Origin: Asterias rubens
Taxonomy: Eukaryota
DNA length: 64,000 nucleotides
Reading direction: 5' to 3'
NCBI RefSeq assembly: GCF_902459465.1
Contig: NC_047082.1
Coordinates: forward strand, 6,758,001 to 6,822,000
Below, piece after piece: positions 6,848-56,160 of the stretch. The notes beneath the pieces are model-generated. The model had not been told where the DNA came from, made no database searches, and saw only the letters and a program-made list of their open reading frames with translations. Positions within the stretch are counted from its first letter, which is position 1. Each line of letters begins with the position of its first letter. Position numbers and translations under genes: made by a program.

Positions 6848-7856
6848 CTGTAGACAAAAGCATAGAGAAGTCTCATTTGAAAAAAAACGACAACAGACAT
6901 GGACTTTGAGGCATTGCATGGTGAGCATTGAGGTTTCAATGTATATTTCAGTTTGCAGTGACACCATGATGTGTATAAACATGTCTACTTTTCTATTGCC
7001 GCTGAGTAGATTTCAGTGTTAGGGAGACTACTTAGTTCTGAAAAGAACTGTACTGCTTTTACGTAATGGGCAGGAGGTAGGAAATCGGCCAGGACTAAAA
7101 ATATTTACTTTGTGGTTCGAGGGGGATCTGTGGTTCGAGGGGGGGTCTCAACATTTCTACTATTTTTCTCTAGTCATTGTCAAAACAAAAAACAACAAAA
7201 ACACCAATAGACAATAGCAAGTTGAAAAGAGCCATGTAACTTGGTGTGTACCTTGTATGCTTAAAGCATGTTTAGAACTCACTCCGCAGCAGTGAAGTTA
7301 ATAACAAAAAGTCCCCTTGAACCACTAAGCGCACAAAATTAGTCCGGTCCTACCTCCTACAATGTACATATACCTCCTACCTATGTAGTAGTACGTAATA
7401 AGCAGAACAGTTCTTTTCAGATCTAATATACGGTACCTCTTCTGGAGGGTTTCAAACCTATGACTCCTGCATTATATTCTGAAATGCTAGACTACCAAGA
7501 TTTCCTGGCGGCAAGCCGCCAGTTATATTGATAACTTATATTGATATAAAGAGTTCTTGTAGGTTTGTCTTGCAGCAACTCAATAACACGCATTGTTCAT
7601 GCAATGCACCATCTTCATAGGAGTTAAAACACAGTTTAGCGAGTATAGTTTGAAAACTTAACAGTAACTCAGCCATGCAGCAAATGGGAGTCCAATAAAA
7701 GGCACAGTATAGGTTACATGTAGACATTATTCATATTATGCGTACTATTTATTCACTGCTTAATGTATCCATTGCAGGATAAAAGCAGTGTTTTCCGTTA
7801 AGGCAGAGATTGGGCCCAGAACTTGAAGGTAAAAATTGAATCGATGTTACTCTTAC

Positions 7857-7989
7857 TTTTTGTTGAGCTCGGCTGATATCTGCTCTAAAGATCTGTTTTT
7901 GGTCTCTGGGACGATGAGGTAAATAAAGATGAAGGAAACTGCACATATTGCACCATATAATAGGAAGGTCCAGGATGGGCCAATACCAT
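7857..7989 (-). CDS. SLC2A10/SLC2A12: SLC2A10/12-like exon 12 (GIGPSWTFLLYGAICAVSFIFIYLIVPETKNRSLEQISAELNK)
   Basis: tag/gtaaga, 133 nt, PETK motif. Confidence 0.93.
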
Positions 7990-8038
7990 CTAAGAGAAGA
8001 GGATAAAACAGTCATGCAATTACCGGGCATTCAATCAG

Positions 8039-9481: not shown

Positions 9482-9732
9482 GTGCTTTACTCAAGTGTCA
9501 TGACAAGGAGTCAAACCCCAAATCTGAGAAAAACGTATGTGACAGTAGCATTTCTAAGATTCAAATTTTGGGGATAAAAACTGATATCTTTTTCCATAAC
9601 TAAATCATTACTTGAAAGTGAAATAATTCTCAAAAGGCTTTATACTATGGAAAGCTGTTGTACTCTGAACTAACCAAGTAAGTCTTAATTGGCACAAATT
9701 TAAGAGTGATTACCAAGTGATGTACCTTCCCT

Positions 9733-9963
9733 TTAAATGAACATCTGTCTGCTACTCCCAATGGGTTAAATGAACATCTGTCTGCTACTCCCAATGGGTT
9801 AAATGAACATCTGTCTGCTACTCCCAATGGGTTAAATGAACATCTGTCTGCTACTCCCAATGGGTTAAATGAACATCTGTCTGCTACTCCCAATGGGTTA
9901 AATGAACATCTGTCTGCTACTCCCAATGGGTTAAATGAACATCTGTCTGCTACTCCCAATGGG
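9733..9963. repeat. Minisatellite, 7 x 33 bp perfect
   Basis: Unit ttaaatgaacatctgtctgctactcccaatggg. Confidence 0.95.
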
Positions 9964-10310
9964 TTATTAACACCTTCAAATTAATAAACTTCTCATATTT
10001 TTTATGTAATCTTGGTTGTTGCAATTAGATTGATTGTTTAAATATATTTCCCAGACCTCCTTGAACTATACAAATATATGGTTTAACATTTTATTTTGCA
10101 ATAGTCAATGTAGTTTTTCTTCCAGATATAACCTTGTTAACATTAATGTTTACATTTCAGCTGCTCAGATCGTTCTGAAAATCCTTTTGTTTCATACTTT
10201 GTCAAGATGGTCTGGGGGTCATCCATGACTGTTGAGGTTATCCTATTTCTTTAAACACGTGTTTATGTATCTATATACCTTTAATTGTAAAATGTTATGT
10301 ATTTTTATCT

Positions 10311-11074
10311 TATCAATATAAACCACAAGGGAAACTGACTGGGTAAATTTGTAAATGATTTTTGGGGTTGAACAAAGAATTGACTAGAGTGGGATTCGAA
10401 CCAACGACCTCCGGATTAACGTGCCGGCGCTCTACCAACTGAGCTATCTAGCCCTATATTGGCGGTGTCCCTATTTTGTCAATATCTTTGTTCGGGGGTG
10501 CCAGTCAGAAGCCATACAACCGTTAACTGCCGTGTAGCCAGGGATCACACCCAAATTACGATACAACCTGGGAAGCGGCAGCTAGGGGATCACCTGAAGG
10601 GGATGCGACTTTTTGTTTCAGATATCAATATAAACCACAAGGGAAACTGACTGGGTAAATTTGTAAATGATTTTTGGGGTTGAACAAAGAATTGACTAGA
10701 GTGGGATTCGAACCAACGACCTCCGGATTAACGTGCCGGCGCTCTACCAACTGAGCTATCTAGCCCTATATTGGCGGTGTCCCTATTTTGTCAATATCTT
10801 TGTTCGGGGGTGCCAGTCAGAAGCCATACAACCGTTAACTGCCGTGTAGCCAGGGATCACACCCAAATTACGATACAACCTGGGAAGCGGCAGCTAGGGG
10901 ATCACCTGAAGGGGATGCGACTTTTTGTTTCAGATATCAATATAAACCACAAGGGAAACTGACTGGGTAAATTTGTAAATGATTTTTGGGGTTGAACAAA
11001 GAATTGACTAGAGTGGGATTCGAACCAACGACCTCCGGATTAACGTGCCGGCGCTCTACCAACTGAGCTATCTA
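10311..11074 (-). repeat. Tandem array, 2.45 x 312 bp, each unit with an internal tRNA-like segment
   Basis: Unit starts at 10311, 10623, 10935; A box TAGCTCAGTTGG and B box GGTTCGAATCC on the minus strand; copies look identical. Confidence 0.9.
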
Positions 11075-11140
11075 TTTTTATCTTCTCCATTTTTTGAGGT
11101 TTTGTTGAAAAAAAAAATGGAAAAAAATGATATGACTTAC

Positions 11141-11263
11141 TTATAACATCCAGGAATGTTAGTGAGACGACAACGTTGGTGCCCCAGTTAAAAATGGATG
11201 CCAGGGAACTCGCACGACCCCGTATACCAGCAGGGAAGATTTCACTTAAAACCAGCCAGCCGA
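11141..11263 (-). CDS. SLC2A10/SLC2A12: SLC2A10/12-like exon 11 ([40 protein letters not shown])
   Basis: cag/gtaagt, 123 nt. Confidence 0.93.
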
Positions 11264-11910
11264 CTGAAAAGAAGAAAAAAAACATACAAAATACTTTCTC
11301 ACTGTGTTTTTTCATGATACATGTGCTTGTTTTGAACAGGCAAATTGGATGAAATTCAAGAGGTTTTTTTTTTGCACATTGTGGTGATTAGTTAGACATA
11401 TATGATTAGTTCTCGGGAAGATTGATGTTGGATCCATTGTGTATTTGGTTTTGTTCGTCTGGACAACACAAGGTAAGAGCGCCAACTGGTCACATGTTTA
11501 TTTGATGGGGTTTTTGTGCTGTATAGTTATTATACAATGGTGCATAACGCACCATTCTTTTGCGCATTGAGGCCCACTGGTATAAGAGCACGCTGTAAAT
11601 ATGTATTATTTTCAGTTCACGCTGTTATTGCGCAGGAATCTAGAATGGTTTTCATTTAGGTCAATAGATGATGTCGATAGAAGACCAACTGAGAGGTTCT
11701 GATTTTAACACCATTTGTCTGATTACTGCTACTATGATATTTGTTTTTTACTCATGGGCTGGAGGTTGATTCAAAAGAAAAATTGATACACAGTTCACCG
11801 TACCGGGGGCAGAATCTTCAGGGGGACAGAAGTCTCCTGCCACACCAGGAGTAACGGTCAATGAGTAAACTTAACAACATTTTACAGAACATGGAAAGAA
11901 ATATGCTTAC

Positions 11911-12547
11911 CTGGTCCAAATCCATATGAATATGCTCCGACATACAAGGTCAATGAGATAACTGCAACTATCTGCGCCAATCCAGGTCCATCCTCCATAG
12001 ACACACCACCAGTACTTGTAGACTCGGGCTTTAATGTTGTCATTAATGCACTGCCAGATTCATGTGGTGAAGTTCTATCACTGACTTGGCTTAAAGCAGC
12101 AGTTGTATAGAGATTTCCTTTCTTAGTCCAGCTTGGTTGCTCAGGTACAGTCATCCCTGTCAAAAGTCCCCCTCCTGTTACCAACGGTGATAAGGTCACT
12201 TTTGTACTACTTGATGTTGACCTTTGAACTCCAGGATCCATCAATGATAAGGTCACTTTTGTACTACTGGATGTGGACTCTTGAATTGCCTCCCGTTTAA
12301 CTCTGTCTCTTCTTGTCTCTTTAAAATAACCTTTGCTTATTGATCCAACAATGCTTAGGAGTTCTGGTGAGCTTCTAGACATTTCCTTTACTACCGAGTC
12401 AGGAATTCTCAGCAAACTGAGGTCCATTTGGTTTACCGATCTGTCCAGACGGGATGTATCTTGCATTTGAGACATGACAACAGTTGTTAGATTCTCCTCT
12501 GAGAGGTTCATAAAGCAGGTCCTCTTAGTCGTAGAGGGGAGAGAGAC
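11911..12547 (-). CDS. SLC2A10/SLC2A12: SLC2A10/12-like exon 10 (large exofacial loop 9 plus TM10, ends YSYGFGP-G)
   Basis: cag/gtaagc, 637 nt; ORF 11882-12583. Confidence 0.9.
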
Positions 12548-12689
12548 CTGACAATTCAAAATAATAAACAAAGTTTTATTCAATGTAGTTTTATTCAGAA
12601 TTCAGAAAGATGAGAAAACTTACACTCATATCGTGTACAATGTGGCAAGTCAGTTTAGGACACATGTTTACATAGACGCCTCTCTTAAT

Positions 12690-43641: not shown

Positions 43642-43797
<156 letters not shown>

Positions 43798-47321: not shown

Positions 47322-47476
47322 CTCATCCTTAAAGGCACCTTTATGCACATCACCAAACTGTCCTTCTCCTATGGTAGAGATTAATGACACTTGATCCCTT
47401 GGTATCTCATAGTCTTTGGTTGCAGGTAAGGCATAATCATCATCCTCTATAATCTCTGCATAGTCATCAGAGAGGG
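47322..47476 (-). CDS. PTK2: FAK exon with autophosphorylation site (DDYAEI) and Gly-rich loop
   Basis: cag/gtagga, 155 nt. Confidence 0.95.
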
Positions 47477-48356: not shown

Positions 48357-48430
48357 CTGATTGCGTGATGTGTTTCCTTCTGCTAGTACTGACTTTAACT
48401 TCAGTGTAATTCTCAACACTGTCTTCACTT
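48357..48430 (-). CDS. PTK2: FAK linker exon (SEDSVENYTEVKVSTSRRKHITQS)
   Basis: tttgtag/gtattt, 74 nt, phase 2-1; bridges the flanking exons in frame. Confidence 0.8.
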
Positions 48431-49199
48431 CTACAAAGAAAAGAAGAACAAAATACTAAAGTTTAAAAATAACATTCCAACGACTAGGATCAAGCTTTAA
48501 GTACAACACCCCTCTTAAAGAAATTAAAGTTGTGTAGCACAGGTTGTGCACAAACTTCCTGGCAACATCTAATGACAATAGCATCTGCCAGGAAACCTTG
48601 CGTAACACGCAGTGTTACTATTATTACATTATCTGGTAGTGAAACCAAGAAAACTCAAGCAAACAAAATCATTGTAGCTTGGGAGTCTGAGGAAACCTAT
48701 TTACAAGGGTGCTTGCTATAATTCAAAACCACCATGGTAAACCTTGCGTTTTCTTTATTTTAAACTTGTATATAAAGAGGCGAAGTATCAGACTGAACAA
48801 GTCCAACCCAAAACACAAAGTGTAGTCTAGGGTCGTACAATGGTACAAACATGTACTCCATGTAAAGCCCCTTTCACATGAGAGAAATTTAGCACGGGTC
48901 CCTTGCTAAATTGTAGCATGGTTGTAACATTTTACAAAATGTACCTCGCGTAAAAGGACAACAATTTTGTCTACTGTCCAAGTTCTCTCGCAAAATTTTG
49001 TCAAACATTGATACAACCTATTTTACCACCATGCTATAATTAAGCGAGGGACCCCAGTTAAATTGCTGTCGTGTGAATAGCACTTAATACATTTTCAAAA
49101 AGGGTACATTTTCAAAAGAGAGCAACAAATGTTCTCTGGGGTCTATATACACATTATAAGTTTGTAGATCATAATAAATCCATTCAGTATATGGCCTAC

Positions 49200-50169
49200 T
49201 TCTTGTGTTCCTTCACTGACGTTGCTATTTTGATCTCTGGTAATGTTGACACTGGTTCCGTCGTGACTGTTTGGCTCTTTTTTAATATTGAAATTGGTTC
49301 CGTCACAAATGGTGCAGTTTTCTTTTTAGTTAATACTGAAGCTGGTTCCGCCATGAATGTTACTGTTTTTCTCTTTGGTAATGTCAGAGCTGTTTCTGCT
49401 ATGAATGGTGCAGTTTGGTTTTTTGCTAATGTTAATGCAAGTTCCGTCATGACTGTTGCAGTTTGGCTCTTTTTCAAAATCGAAATTGGTTCTGTCACAA
49501 ATGTTACACTTTTCTTTTTAGTTAATACTGAAGCTGGGTCTGCCATGAATGTTACTGTTTTCTTCTTTGGTAATGTCGGAGCTGTTTCTGCTATGAATGG
49601 TGCAGTTTGGTTCTTTGCTAATATTAACGCTGGTTCCCTCCTGACTGTTGAAGTTTGACTCTTTTTCAAAATCGAAATTGGTTGTGTCACGAATGTTGCA
49701 CTTTTCTTTTTAGTTAATACTGAAGCTGGTTCCGCCCTGAATGTTACTGTTTTCTTCTTTGGTAATGTCAGAGCTGTTCCTGCCACAACTGTTGCAGTTT
49801 GGTTCTTTGTTAATGCTAAATCTGATCCTGAGATCAATGTTGCAGATTTCATCAATGGTACATGTAAAGCTGGTTCGTCTGTTATTATTGCAGTCTGTTG
49901 AGACATTAATGCTGAATCTTGTTCTTTCGGTTCTTCGGATTCTAACGCGGTAGATTTCTTTCTCTTTAGCGAATCTTCACCTCCATCGTTGAGTAACATC
50001 ACATCAAGTTCCACCACATCCACAAAGACCCAATCCATGCCGTGGTAAGCATCCTCCAAATCAAGATCAAGAACTTCCACAACGACCCAAGCCATTGTTT
50101 TTTTCAAAGCTCCACAGCAAGATTTTGTAGAAGAATCCTCTAATCTGAGAGCACTATCCCTCCAAGCTT
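49200..50169 (-). CDS. PTK2: Candidate large alternative FAK linker exon: tandem 16-aa repeats with RVxF and SILK (PP1-docking-like) motifs
   Basis: 330-codon ORF 49196-50188. Donor AA|gtaggc is phase 2 and joins exon 48430. Possible acceptors: ctgtag (exon start 50169, phase 1) or ctctcag (50144, phase 2). Confidence 0.6.
49244..49813 (-). repeat. Coding tandem repeat: 48-bp monomers in a 192-bp higher-order unit (~3 copies)
   Basis: Period of 64 aa: RVxF Phe at ORF residues 150/214/278, SILK at 172/236/300. Confidence 0.92.
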
Positions 50170-52013
50170 CTACAGTATTTGCAGACAAATGAAAGCATTA
50201 ATCAAGCCTAATATGGAGTCGCCAATAAGTTGATGTTTAAGTGAAGCTGGGCAAGTGCATAACATCTGTTTGCAATGGATGCAAGTAACTACATGTAACT
50301 GAAGGTAGAAGCATTGTAGGTTCGGTTTTGTACTAGTTTTTCAAGGTTTATGATCAAATTTTCTAAACAGACAGATCTAATGATTCATTTGTTCTGACCA
50401 ATTCTTACCAACATTTCTAACACAACGTTCCTGACCAAGGTCATGAAGGTGTGGAGTCTGCCTCTAGCAGTATGAACCTGCAAAAGGACATGTATTTCCC
50501 ATGTGGTTTAACCAAAGGATTTGCCCAATGTCAACAATTGGCCATGACTCAAGAGATGACACTGCTATTTACCACAAGGGCTTTCCCCGAGTTGTTACTT
50601 TGGAACGGTCATTCACACTCACGCATGGGAGCTGTGAGCAGTATGTCGGGTCTGTGTGATCTGTGTGGTTGTACACATACATTGCACGCCATGAACTATT
50701 TGATGGTAAATATAACTCATCATCATGTTTATTCACATAGTTGACTACCCAAGGCAAAGGATATGATCAAAAATTGTTTGGCATCACAGTGAGATGGCAT
50801 GATTATTTACTACAAGGTTTTCCTGTACCTTTGATTTAGAAGCGCTCATTCACACAAACATCTATAGGGTCTGAGTGGTGCATGAATGACATCAACTACA
50901 TGAATCATTGTTTGCACACATAGTTGATGACTCAAGGCAAAAAGGTATCACTCAAGTTCTCATAAAAACACAAAAATATTGAAGTCATTGATGATTTATA
51001 AAGCATTAATACTATAAAGGGAAAGCTCCTAGATATGGCCAATGACAAACAGCACAAAAAATCACAGGCTGTCAAAAGCATACATGTACATGTTGTACCT
51101 GTGGTCATTAAGGCAAAAACCGCTATTCTCAAATTGGTCTATTCAGCCACAGCTGACTCTGCTCAGCAACTACCAAGGCACACAACTAAATGGTCAATTC
51201 TCGACTGAAGAACCATTTCTCAGGATGATTGACAACAATATAAACTTGATCAGACTTTCGAGTTCTTGAGCAAGGAAAGAACAAAACACATGTAAAAAGT
51301 TTAGCAATATCCCATTGCTTACATTGATGGCATCCCCTGAACTTACAGGGTATTATGAGCCGACTTGTCAAAATGTACAGTTAACTAAGCCCTAAGGGAG
51401 AACAGAGAAGCAAATAGTGCATGGCCTAGAACAACAATGATGTATCCAAATTAAAACCAACTGGTTTAACAATCTCTTCCAAGCCTCCATGTTCCTCCTT
51501 TCTTTCTGGGAAACAGAAATGCTTAACTGTCCCGGCCGCAAATTTCTTTTGTTTTTACCACACGCTGGCCATCGCATACACGCGTAAGGTATGGGCGCTT
51601 TCCCGGATCCCTTCACTGTTGACCCTGTGGCCAGCGTGTGATACGGGGGAAAAAATTGCATCCCAGCCACATTTCAAATAGCAGGATGTTTTATATTACA
51701 GCCATCATTTCCTCTATAGGGAAGTACAGCACTGGTTTCCTGCTTCACCTAGTCAGAAGGGATTGGCTTACTGCATAAGCAACGTACAATACAATATAAC
51801 GGGAACCGGCTATTAACAGAAATGACACCAACACTCATTTTGGTTTGATATTAACCCTTATTCTATTAATAGAAGTTCCTCATGTTACAGCTAACCTTGT
51901 CACATTCCCAGAGTGCTGCAACAATAATGATTACCGATTGTCATTATACCAGAAAGGAGTCATACTATAACTGTACTCAAACCTCTCCGAGACTAAACAT
52001 TTGCCTAACTTAC

Positions 52014-52053
52014 TCATTCTCAAGTGGAAGTGATGGTAGAGCCCTGTCCCCTT
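52014..52053 (-). CDS. PTK2: FAK linker exon (E-GDRALPSLPLEN)
   Basis: tttacag/gtaagt, 40 nt, phase 1-2; resembles vertebrate EGERALPSIP. Confidence 0.88.
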
Positions 52054-54039
52054 CTGTAAACAAAAACAAAAAAGTTATCATGATCAAGTAATCAGGTTAA
52101 CAAAATTTAATCATGAAACTTTCTAAGCAATCATTGGGTATTTCTAAATAGCCTAGAAAGATAAGACATTCTGATTGGTCAAGAACCTTAGCTTTGCGAA
52201 CCCCAACCAGAAACATGTTTGGGCTTTGGTTCACAAGTTCAGCTGTGTGGCAAAAAGGACGTACATGCACATGTAGCTGCTTCCACCACTTTACGTGAAA
52301 GGCTTTGTTTCATTAGATTGTATAAATTATGAAACTAATACAAATTTGTTTACATATCAATCCATGCTAAAAAAAAACAATCACTACATTGTTTTCTGAT
52401 TGTGCCGCAAGGAAATTCACTTCTCTTCTGATATTCACATGAGGTTTTAACTGGGCATAGGATGTCACTTAACCATCCAATACATTATTAAAGAAAATTA
52501 AACTAAACACTGCCTTAATGTCATTGGTGTCAACACCGATAATGTTTCTAGTTCCACATCTGTTTTCGCACATTTCTCTGAAATTGTTTTGGACAATAAA
52601 TTATACATCAGAAAGATTTTGTTTCTGATCATAAGCAAAACACATCACCAGTCTTAAACCAGCTTGAACTGGATTGTTAAATCACATCATACCGCAGTAG
52701 TTGTATCTCCATGGATACTTAATTTAAGCCAACCAATGAGAAGAATGCACTCAGGCTCTAGTTTTTACAAACTTGTCTTTGTATTGATATGTTTGCAATG
52801 AAAAATATTAGTAAATTTGCTCCCGAACACAAACACAAGTATAACAATATGAACAGGTGTTTTTTTAAAGGTACAACAGTAGATCATTTATCCTATAGCC
52901 ATGACCGGGCCATATCAAGATTACAAAAACAGAACTTTTAATTCTTCTTACATGCCTTCCGCGTACAAACTTTTAAAGAAACTGCTTTCTAGTTAATGTA
53001 GCAGAATTGAAAACAAGAAAATTAAATGGAATCTCTGCTGAGAATGATAATTTAATCAATAACCATTTAAAATATTGAGTACAGATTACCCAATCAATGA
53101 AGGTCAGAAAATAGGCTTCAATATATCTGATGCAAAAAAGCATCAACATTGAACAGCAAATATTCTGAGCAAAAGCGAGTTTTTCTTAAAATTAATTTAT
53201 TAAAGCAAACTGTCGTTGAAGATTTTGTGCAAGTTTGATCACAAATCATGAACATGCTTTTTGAAACTGCCAACTTGGTGATTGCTGTCCTTTAATCCAT
53301 GCATCTTATTCGCTTTTATTCTTTATTAAAATAAGCAATTAATAAATTGCAAAAGGGAAAATAATTGGTGAAGAAAAAAGCACTCCTGCAAAATTTTTGT
53401 CTTTTATACATAGAAATGTTATCTCAGGAGCGCCTGACTGGAATTGATGATCTTGAAATAATTTTGGAAAGTGCAGAGTAAAAAGCAAGACCTCCAAGCT
53501 GATTAAACATGACTTCCATCCCTGATGACATGTAAGTCACAGCAAACACACATTTACATGTGTTGTATCAATTGGAGATGGGTAAGAGCCAACAGATATC
53601 ACATCTGTCAAGTGCCTTTCAAACTAAAAGGTTTTTTCCACCAAGACTTGAGCCACCCACTGCAGGAAAATGGTTGGTACACGACTGGCATTTTAATGAT
53701 CTAATAACTCAACATAACATAAGTTCATTTAACTTACAGTTGATCCAACAAACATTAACTTTGGCATTGTATATTTGAAGACGAAACATGTGAATAAGTA
53801 TTTTCGTTTCAGAAACCAATTATGTACAATCCCTTTTTGATATATTTCATAAAAACTAAAGGATTGGAATGAGCACTTTTCTAAAAACTAATGATGTAAA
53901 AGAAAAGAGTACTCAAATTAGTATTTTTCTTCTACATGTAGCACCCTTTTTGTTTACTATCCCCAAGTGTTGTGAAAGTGTACTATGAGTAAAATATTGA
54001 GTTATGCAAGAGTAAATTGTATCATCAGTGTTTATGGAA

Positions 54040-56160
54040 CCTATGTGAGTGCTTATGGAATGTATCAGGAGAGATTATGGAATGTAACAAGAGTGTTTAT
54101 GGATTGTAACAGGAGTGTATTATGGAATGTAACGAGAGTGTTTATGAATGTAATAAGAGTGTATTATGGAATGTAACAAGAGTGTTTATGGAATGTAATA
54201 AGAGTGTATTATGGAATGTAACGAGAGTGTTTATGGAATGTAATAAGAGTGTATTATGGAATGTAATAGGTGTGTATTATGGAATGTAATAGGTGTGTAT
54301 TATGGAATGTAATAGGTGTGTATTATGGAATGTAATAGGTGTGTATTATGGAATGTAACGAGAGTGTTTATGGATTGTAACAGGAGTGTATTATGGAATG
54401 TAACGAGAGTGTTTATGGAATGTAATAGGAGTGTATTATGGAATGTAACGAGAGTGTTTATGGAATGTAATAGGTGTGTATTATGGAATGTAACGAGAGT
54501 GTTTATGGAATGTAATAAGAGTGTATTATGGAATGTAACGAGAGTGTTTATGGATTGTAACAGGAGTGTTTATGAATGTAATAAGAGTGTATTATGGAAT
54601 GTAACGAGAGTGTTTATGAATGTAATAGGAGTGTATTATGGAATGTAATAGGTGTGTATTATGGAATGTAATAGGTGTGTATTATGGAATGTAACGAGAG
54701 TGTTTATGGAATGTAATAAGAGTGTATTATGGAATGTAATAAGAGTGTTTATGGAATGTAATAAGAGTGTATTATGGAATGTAATAGGAGTGTATTATGG
54801 AATGTAACGAGAGTGTTTATGGAATGTAATAAGAGTGTATTATGGAATGTAATAGGTGTGTATTATGGAATGTAATAGGTGTGTATTATGGAATGTAATA
54901 GGTGTGTATTATGGAATGTAACGAGAGTGTTTATGGAATGTAATAAACGTGTATTATGGAATGTAATAGGTGTGTATTATGGAATGTAATAGGTGTGTAT
55001 TATGGAATGTAATAGGTGTGTATTATGGAATGTAACGAGAGTGTTTATGGAATGTAATAAGAGTGTATTATGGAATGTAATAGGTGTGTATTATGGAATG
55101 TAATAGGTGTGTATTATGGAATGTAACGAGAGTGTTTATGGAATGTAATAGGAGTGTTTATGGAATGTAAAAAGAGTGTATTATGGAATGTAACGAGAGT
55201 GTTTATGGAATGTAATAAGAGTGTATTATGGAATGTAATAGGTGTGTATTATGGAATGTAATAGGTGTGTATTATGGAATGTAATAGGTGTGTATTATGG
55301 AATGTAACAAGAGTGTTTATGGAATGTAATAAGAGTGTATTATGGAATGTAATAGGTGTGTATTATGGAATGTAATAGGTGTGTATTATGGAATGTAATA
55401 GGTGTGTATTATGGAATGTAATAAGAGTGTATTATGGAATGTAACGAGAGTGTTTATGGATTGTAACAGGAGTGTTTATGAATGTAATAAGAGTGTATTA
55501 TGGAATGTAACGAGAGTGTTTATGGAATGTAATAAGAGTGTATTATGGAATGTAACGAGAGTGTTTATGAATGTAACGAGTGTTTATGGAATGTAATAAG
55601 AGTGTATTATGGAATGTAACGAGAGTGTTTATGAATGTAACGAGAGTGTTTATGGAATGTAATAAGAGTTTATTATGGAATGTAACGAGAGTGTTTATGG
55701 ATTGTAACAGGAGTGTTTATGAATGTAATAAGAGTGTATTATGGAATGTAACGAGAGTGTTTATGGAATGTAATAAGAGTGTATTATGGAATGTAACGAG
55801 AGTGTTTATGAATGTAACGAGAGTGTTTATGGAATGTAATAAGAGTGTATTATGGAATGTAACGAGAGTGTTTATGAATGTAACAGGAGTGTATTATGGA
55901 ATGTAACTGGAGCATGCATTTATGATATGTAATGGGAGCATATAAGGAATGTAACAGGAGCTTTTATGGAATGTAACGGGAGTGTTTATGGAGTGTATAA
56001 TATAGAATGTATCGTGAGTGTTTATGTTATGTAATGTGAGTGTTTATGGAATGTAACAAGAGTGTTTATGAAATGTAACTTGAGTGTTTATGGAAGCTAT
56101 TGTGAGGATTTATGAAATGGAAATAGAGTGTTGATGTATTGTTTTGTTTATGGAATGTAC
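54040..56160. repeat. ~2-kb minisatellite of 22-23-bp variants with decayed edges
   Basis: Units gagtgtttatggaatgtaataa / gagtgtattatggaatgtaacga / gtgtgtattatggaatgtaatag. Confidence 0.95.

Follow-up and report, generated by a model that had tools for sequence, protein, structure and literature searches.

Results

A candidate repeat-extended alternative exon in the FERM-kinase linker of FAK

The longest open stretch in 64,000 nucleotides (nt) of Asterias rubens DNA (contig NC_047082.1, positions 6,758,001 to 6,822,000; hereafter the window) was found on the minus strand at 49199-50197, inside a linker intron of the gene for the kinase FAK (PTK2). It runs for 333 codons without a stop and joins a 5' module that is conserved on two marine contigs to a tandem array of 16-residue units. 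Our reading, to which we give about an even chance, is that FAK has here an alternative coding exon for the linker between the FERM and kinase domains, with a tail that was amplified in frame in the A. rubens lineage.

According to this proposal, the exon would follow the PR1 SH3-binding exon and precede the pair of exons leading to Tyr-397. The ancestral exon would have had approximately 55 codons and phase 2 at both ends, the form kept on the two marine contigs, and would have been made up of a duplicated acidic-hydrophobic module (M-x-W-V-x-V-D-V-V-E-L-D-V), a short Lys-rich tail and a donor. A 16-residue unit of the tail would then have been amplified in frame about 15 times in this lineage, so that the present exon would extend over approximately 945 nt, from 50144 (or 50153 or 50159) to 49200, and would add about 315 residues rich in Lys, Thr, Ala and Pro. 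Its inclusion would move the PR1 SH3 site and the Tyr-397 SH2 site apart and make the autoinhibitory linker longer, and the RVxF and SILK motifs of the repeats would, as a motif-level proposal, recruit protein phosphatase 1 (PP1). The choice among a cassette exon, a mutually exclusive short exon, an internal first exon and a terminal exon was made by sequence logic alone.

The FAK gene and the splice signals of the open frame

The minus strand of the window carries the FAK gene. Kinase motifs were located on this strand at 47346, 46504, 43708 and 43216, the exon at 43642-43797 matched PK_Tyr_Ser-Thr in Pfam, and the exon at 47476-47322 aligned with the chicken and human FAK entries 2j0k, 2j0j and 6ty3 of the PDB (E = 5e-13) over TDDYAEIIDEEDTYTMPSTRDYEIQRE...GEGQFGDVH. 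The linker is encoded in the order EGDRALPSLPLENE (52053-52014), SEDSVENYTEVKVSTSRRKHITQS (48430-48357) and ALSDDYAEII..., and the open frame is located in the first linker intron, between the first exon, whose PR1 motif has been described in vertebrate FAK (PMC1570463), and the exon at 48430-48357. On the upstream side, nothing of the gene was identified beyond the PR1 exon (RALPSLP). When 52-64 kb was scanned for motifs, no end of the FERM domain was seen, and the FERM exons may lie outside the window. The 74-nt constitutive linker exon at 48357-48430 on the minus strand has a tyrosine motif of its own, SVENYTEV, upstream of SDDYAEII, and this tyrosine may be a second SH2-docking site without a counterpart in the vertebrate linker.

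The frame has 330 amino acids when counted from its first TTG and 299 when counted from ATG 50095. The next longest open stretches in the window have 239 codons and, on the opposite strand of the same repeat, 193 codons. An earlier note on this DNA had described a hidden alternative FAK linker exon with a 330-residue frame between the RALPSLP and SEDSVENY exons, an in-frame TAA upstream and a phase-2 donor suited to exon 48430, and these three features are all present: the TAA lies at 50200-50198, and the donor gaa/GTAGGC (the slash marks the splice boundary) after 49200 leaves two bases, as exon 48430 requires. The PR1 exon donor GA/GTAAGT at 52014 also leaves 2 nt, and the upstream donor (52014) and the next acceptor (48430) are thus both phase 2. 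In a simple weight matrix the 49200 donor scored 5.1 and the real donor of exon 48430 scored 5.25, and the GTAGG start of the 49200 donor is common to the confirmed exon with the Tyr-397 equivalent (donor GAG/GTAGGA). When the 49200 donor is read through, its own TAG (49198-49196) ends the frame.

Two other parts of the earlier claim failed. The ctgtag acceptor with an exon start at 50169 needs 1 nt from the preceding exon, the PR1 exon gives 2, and the junction reads E-S-L-E-G-stop. The SEDSVENY exon (48430-48357) had been taken for the Tyr-397-like site, and the equivalent of Tyr-397 was found one exon further, as SDDYAEII in exon 47476-47322. The hidden exon itself gained support from the 5' module, conserved at the protein level on two independent contigs with phase-matched splice sites, and from the array, which behaves like coding sequence. 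In place of the rejected acceptor, the in-phase acceptors 50159, 50153 and 50144 would give cassettes of 960, 954 and 945 nt, respectively, when joined to 49200, with phase 2 at both ends; the acceptor at 50144 gives a cassette of 945 nt and 315 codons that keeps the FAK frame.

The conserved 5' module

The frame was searched with phmmer against 1.84 billion representative proteins, and seven matches were obtained at E values up to 0.001. Two of them, P0004 and P0006, are open reading frames (ORFs) of 54 and 51 residues that match residues 35-82 of the frame with 46-50% identity (E = 6e-5 and 1.8e-4, respectively); both start with MAWVVV and both are singleton clusters. The remaining matches, P0001, P0002, P0003, P0005 and P0007, were rejected as unrelated repeat proteins with low-complexity matches (the sequences of P0001, P0002 and P0007 were read). 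The 5' module is the only part of the frame with real homologues in this protein set. The homologues come from marine or environmental metagenomes, one from a Tara Oceans scaffold of 523 nt (L001) and one from an assembly contig of 632 nt in ENA (L002). Two scans of JGI (Joint Genome Institute) metagenome contigs, one with peptide patterns and one with a degenerate DNA pattern, gave no additional homologues. Beside the homologous exon, L002 has a 71-residue ORF at 417-632 on its minus strand, cut by the contig end and without a Pfam match, which is probably noise.

The module is an internal duplication of MAWVVVEVLDLDL and MDWVFVDVVELDV, which have in common the pattern M-x-W-[VI]-x-[VL]-[DEN]-[VI]-[VLF]-[DE]-[LF]-[DE]-[LV]. 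A role in docking or autoregulation is a speculative possibility for this duplicated, acidic W-x-x-[VL] sequence. An LC3- or FIP200-type reading of its W-x-x-[LIV] would be a resemblance only. An AlphaFold2 (AF2) prediction on the three-sequence module alignment gave a pLDDT (predicted local distance difference test) of 47 and no usable structure.

At the DNA level, the identity of the module to L001 and L002 was 68-71% across 105 nt and began exactly at the ATG, upstream of which it dropped to a background of 33-43%. Variable columns were distributed over the three codon positions as 14/8/23, of 35 each, and the pairwise differences as 10/6/18, 10/5/18 and 11/6/13, a pattern expected of a translated frame. 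Both homologous ORFs end at a TAA inside a perfect GTAAGT (TGG GG/GTAAGT and AAA AT/GTAAGT), which makes these sites phase-2 donors, as FAK would require at this place. In L001 a strong phase-2 acceptor, tttgtttttttctgggaagcag/T-ATG (cag/T-ATG), gives a frame-keeping exon of 162 nt; in L002 the in-phase acceptor gives 174 nt, and the better pyrimidine tract serves an out-of-phase site. The Lys/Glu-rich tail that follows the module in A. rubens matches the position of the P0004 tail IKREKEKKKSWG and the P0006 tail SKGKQEKM. Taken together, conservation, codon pattern and phase make it probable that the 5' module is a genuine coding exon.

The opposite view, in which the intron has a conserved but non-coding element in the 5' block and the long ORF arose merely as a side effect of recent tandem duplication, would account for a nucleotide identity (68-71%) that is high compared to the amino-acid identity (60%), for the scores of other tblastx frames and for the absence of expression evidence. 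It is hard to reconcile with the third-position excess among the variable columns, with the perfect GTAAGT donors that close the frame in both homologues and with their phase-matched acceptors. No Rfam family was found at threshold, the only matches being sub-threshold, plant-miRNA-like and placed on a hairpin outside the exon and in the upstream intron. We regard this view as quite improbable.

A second alternative takes the sharp edge of conservation at face value. If ATG 50095 were the start of an alternative first coding exon driven by an intronic promoter, with or without the array, the product would be a FERM-less FAK with a new N-terminus and should be without FERM autoinhibition. Conservation starting exactly at the ATG is what such an exon would show, and in all three sequences the ATG has an A at -3 and a G at +4 and an in-frame stop lies 75-102 nt upstream; in addition, the in-phase acceptors of this genome are weak. 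However, an excellent acceptor with a good pyrimidine tract is present in L001; it ends 1 nt short of the ATG and has the phase that FAK needs. M-x-W also opens the second internal copy of the module, so that the Met may be a residue of the motif and not a start, and promoter evidence was not found. An internal first exon is accordingly judged unlikely, though not as improbable as a non-coding element.

An in-frame tandem array between the module and the donor

Between 49269 and 49824, Tandem Repeats Finder identified repeat periods of 48, 96 and 192 nt, which bears out the 16-residue monomers within a 64-residue higher-order repeat that had been read from the sequence before. The 192-nt higher-order unit is present in 2.9 copies with 89% identity and no indels. 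Arranged in rows of 16 residues, the copies show four monomer types: ALTLPKKKTVTF.AEP; ASVLTKKKS.TFVT.P; ISILKKSQT.TV...P; and AL.LAKNQTAPFIAET. A position matrix built from ten clear monomers was used to extend the array beyond the limits of Tandem Repeats Finder. Three old, degenerate monomers were found in register at residues 126, 110 and 94, with 73, 65 and 58% identity to the consensus, respectively, compared to a highest value of 52% among 48-nt windows of the flanking introns. The probable oldest monomer, DSLKRKKSTALESEEP, lies at residue 75 within the Lys-rich tail and is shifted by an in-frame 9 nt. At the other end, the degenerate last monomer VSTLPEIKIATSVKEH (49252-49205) ends 5 nt short of the 49200 donor, and nothing monomer-like was found beyond 49205. 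With edges at residue 75/94 and at 49205, the array takes up the whole distance from the module to the phase-2 donor. A predicted tryptic peptide is, for example, TVTFMAEPASVLTK.

The array has no stops over about 250 codons, and its only length changes are +9 nt and -6 nt, the latter in the last copy, all of them in frame. The ratio of nonsynonymous to synonymous substitution (dN/dS) among the three 192-nt copies, a check that the earlier note had proposed, was 0.50, 0.22 and 0.23, with small counts. Variable sites among these copies were distributed over the codon positions as 3/10/14 (p=0.03), and 4 of the 10 synonymous changes are CpG transitions. A non-coding minisatellite would be expected to contain stops and frame-breaking indels and to have boundaries that bear no relation to exon signals. 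None of these was found here; the statistics are modest. The interior of a transposon, which the earlier note had considered as another source of the repeat, was rejected for want of dispersed copies and of a protein family: within the window a 26-mer of the repeat is confined to the array, and no relatives of the array were found among the 1.84 billion representative proteins by phmmer or in Pfam. An AF2 single-sequence model of the exon gave a pLDDT of 36, below 50 throughout, and no ordered structure, a result that is consistent with disorder but is weak evidence for it and says little either way.

In a crude neutral simulation of such an array, a given frame stayed open in 2.6% of the runs, and the approximately 55 further open codons between the module and the array would occur by chance in about 5% of cases. 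Tandem arrays make long ORFs cheaply, as is seen from the opposite strand and from the other arrays of the window, which are also open, and the length of the open frame is therefore weak evidence by itself. The stronger argument is the continuity of the frame with the independently supported module, together with array edges that coincide with exon signals. On balance these features favor, by a modest degree of belief, translation of the array together with the 5' module.

Weighing the long exon against a short or a terminal exon

Several observations weigh against the repeat-extended exon. The pyrimidine tracts of acceptors 50159, 50153 and 50144 are poor (6-7/18, compared to 17/18 at exon 48430), and a length of about 945 nt is unusual for an internal exon. 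The top-scoring donor within the frame is not that at 49200 but 49981 (gag/GTGAAG, phase 1, score 7.35). The array, RVxF and SILK are absent from both homologous exons, and the contigs of 523 and 632 nt are too short to place the homologues in FAK genes. The four monomer types have no third-position excess among themselves (12/9/10 and 10/8/13), and few stops interrupt the array on the plus strand either, where it has open stretches of 193 and 80 codons. Protein look-ups and searches gave no product with this frame: exact-product look-ups were negative for the ATG-started frame and for two plus-strand frames, and a set of 5.8 billion proteins yielded nothing for the whole frame, the module alone or region-restricted queries, with full-length and annotated FAK isoforms carrying the exon falling outside the length filter. 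The frame had no match in Pfam, neither the frame nor the 5' module had relatives in ESM Atlas and Pfam, and GC content and CpG did not separate the frame from the introns.

Some of these points are what would be seen if only a short exon were real and the array were an intronic minisatellite open by chance. If it ended at 49981, the exon would have 164 nt, would be mutually exclusive with the 74-nt SEDSVENY exon and would be spliced to 47476; both exons are of 3n+2 length with phase 2 in and phase 1 out, a classic mutually exclusive arrangement. If it ended at the second internal donor-like site, the degenerate phase-2 site 49947 (cgc/GTTAGA), the distance from the module to the donor would be close to that in the homologues. 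The homologous exons are indeed short (162-174 nt), other arrays of the window give ORFs of 110 codons, this array has a nearly open frame on its other strand as well, and the monomer types are without codon periodicity. A short exon, however, requires a coincidence of approximately 1e-3, in which the array is open in the frame of the module (2.6%) and the intervening sequence is open as well (about 5%). It also leaves as chance events that the array begins inside the Lys-rich tail of the exon and ends 5 nt before a phase-2 donor, that every length change in the array is a multiple of 3, and that dN/dS between copies is below 1; for an end at 49981, the donors of the homologues are phase 2 and not phase 1. 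The short exon is considered fairly unlikely, and it is the strongest of the alternatives.

In a further alternative, no splicing would occur at 49200, the frame would stop at TAG 49198-49196, and intronic polyadenylation would give a kinase-less protein of FERM, linker and repeats. The frame does close at the donor's own TAG, and one AATAAA, the only one, is present at 48759, some 440 nt further on. However, any phase-2 exon with a GTAA or GTAG donor shows a read-through stop, as both homologues do, and beyond a single, distant poly(A) signal nothing else was found in support. A terminal exon is the least probable of the alternatives and is considered very improbable.

With the repeat-extended cassette exon as the preferred reading, 49200 would be the orthologue of the homologues' donor in preference to 49947, since the array lies within the exon and 49200 is where it comes to an end; this assignment is unproven.

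RVxF and SILK motifs in the array

Motifs were counted with the strict RVxF pattern [HKR][ACHKMNQRSTV]V[CHKNQRST][FW] and the SILK pattern [GS]IL[KR]. The array was found to contain four RVxF matches (three KTVTF and one KSVTF) and three SILK matches, the numbers claimed before, and each of the first two SILK motifs lies 38 residues N-terminal to the next RVxF. When the 64-residue unit was shuffled with matched composition, RVxF and SILK occurred together with P=3e-5, which indicates that their joint presence is not a composition effect. The repeats show K-[KR]-K-T-V-T-F and S-I-L-K, fitting the published definitions of the two main PP1 docking motifs, and phosphorylation of RV[S/T]F blocks binding (PMC9813921).

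Since the motifs stand in the usual order and at the usual spacing, PP1 recruitment is the most concrete functional guess. The SILK-RVxF spacing is as in Inhibitor-2 and KNL1. Against it, the choice of motif was post hoc, and of the three repeat copies a single one has KSVTF. Judged by the alignment of the copies, effectively one RVxF and one SILK would have arisen and then been copied by duplication. Even if the array is translated, PP1 docking is rather doubtful. A wider proposal joins these elements: the linker exon would be an old one of invertebrate FAK, common at least to echinoderm-like marine animals, and the array would let one FAK molecule hold several PP1 catalytic subunits, with splicing and phosphorylation of the Thr in RV-T-F acting as switches. 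This combination is speculative and unlikely.

Other features of the window

The coordinates of the features discussed above are collected in Table 1.

Table 1. Features of the FAK linker region on the minus strand of the window, from upstream to downstream.
Feature	Position	Strand	Evidence
PR1-type SH3-binding linker exon, codes (E)GDRALPSLPLENE	52014..52053	(-)	Sequence read
In-frame TAA opening the 333-codon stretch	50198..50200	(-)	Sequence read
Candidate acceptors AG/50169 (out of phase), AG/50159, AG/50153, AG/50144 (in phase)	50144..50171	(-)	Sequence
Acidic-hydrophobic module MAWVVVEVLDLDLEDAYHGMDWVFVDVVELDVMLL (MAWVVV...VMLL), from ATG 50095	49991..50095	(-)	phmmer, blastn, tblastx, codon pattern
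Lys/Glu-rich tail NDGGEDSLKRKKSTALESEEPKEQ, with donor-like sites 49981 and 49947	49919..49990	(-)	Sequence, position matrix
In-register array of 48-nt (16-residue) monomers, 4 RVxF and 3 SILK	49205..49918	(-)	Tandem Repeats Finder, position matrix
Candidate donor gaa/GTAGGC, last exon base 49200, phase 2	49191..49200	(-)	Sequence and weight matrix
Next linker exon (K/E)SEDSVENYTEVKVSTSRRKHITQS, 74 nt, phase 2 in, phase 1 out	48357..48430	(-)	Sequence and phase
Exon with Tyr-397 equivalent (ALSDDYAEIIEDDDYALPATKDYEIPRD...GEGQFGDVHKG) and kinase domain start	47322..47476	(-)	PDB alignment and sequence read

About 120 nt past the candidate donor, at 48873-49077, lies a hairpin formed by a 58-nt inverted repeat, with arms that are 81% complementary and separated by 89 nt. 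The hairpin, on which sub-threshold matches to plant miRNA precursor models fall, resembles a miniature inverted-repeat transposable element (MITE) and is present as a single copy in the window.

On the minus strand, matches to the C-terminal part of Sugar_tr (a sugar transporter of the major facilitator superfamily) were found at 7856-8011 and 11043-11387 (E = 5e-10 and 4e-8, respectively), indicating a transporter gene downstream of FAK on the same strand. The second-longest open stretch, 239 codons at 11885-12601 (minus), lies just upstream of the transporter exon; it is Ser/Thr-rich, contains STSSSTKVTLS twice and had no Pfam match. Two minisatellites, at 9648-9980 and 53976-55903, have open frames of approximately 110 codons on each strand, with units PLGVADRCSFN and VLWNVTRVFMECNKS. 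A direct duplication of approximately 310 nt at 10388-10647 and 10700-10959 gives identical open stretches of 49 and 76 codons, and open stretches like these, of the type SNSWKITSFSKT, are found again near 100, 4700, 9230 and 59330, which points to a dispersed repeat family.

Discussion

The linker between the FERM and kinase domains sets the activity of FAK, and small vertebrate exons in it change autophosphorylation. A conserved invertebrate linker exon, if confirmed, would mean that splicing control of the linker is either older or convergent, and would add a new conserved peptide module. The repeat extension illustrates how the short tail of an exon can become a long in-frame tract with linear motifs and no predicted order. 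PP1 docking, if true, would give a sequence basis for a reported but poorly mapped link between FAK and PP1, and, if the scaffold reading also holds, FAK would be both a tyrosine kinase and a scaffold for a Ser/Thr phosphatase.

Bianchi et al. (2005), as cited in PMC1382259, reported that the PP1 catalytic subunit physically associates with FAK in vertebrate cells, and the interaction is reported to map to the FAK C-terminal domain. The array proposed here would likewise bring the PP1 catalytic subunit to FAK, but in the vertebrate association it is the C-terminal domain that is involved, and no canonical docking-motif repeat.

Among PP1 partners, the arrangement in the array is like that of Inhibitor-2 and KNL1 in having S-I-L-K about 38 residues N-terminal to K-T-V-T-F and basic residues before RVxF, and the Thr at the x position could be phosphorylated to block binding. 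It differs in that known PP1 partners have one motif set that is conserved in orthologues, whereas here three young copies are found that are absent from two homologous exons.

FRNK is a FAK isoform produced from an internal promoter (PMC1570463). It provides a precedent for promoters embedded in FAK introns and so bears on the possibility of an internal first exon; FRNK is without FERM and kinase, whereas a start at ATG 50095 would keep the kinase.

The closest comparison is with the alternative exons 13, 14 and 16 of vertebrate FAK (boxes 28, 6 and 7), which flank Tyr-397; boxes 6 and 7 alter autophosphorylation, and the function of box 28 is unknown (PMC1570463). The earlier statement that vertebrate FAK has no such insert therefore holds only in part: vertebrates do have short alternative exons near Tyr-397, and none of them is a tandem repeat. 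Corsi et al. found the vertebrate linker exons to be absent from the non-vertebrates that they surveyed (PMC1570463). Like boxes 28, 6 and 7, the candidate exon has a linker position after PR1 and near the autophosphorylation site, would keep the frame and is conserved across species, here in the 5' module only. The vertebrate boxes have 6-28 residues, compared to about 55 in the ancestral form and about 315 in the present one, and the repeat extension is unprecedented among them. By position, phase and conservation, the candidate would be an exon of the same kind as the vertebrate alternative linker exons, built around a conserved module that is, as far as compared, unrelated to theirs.

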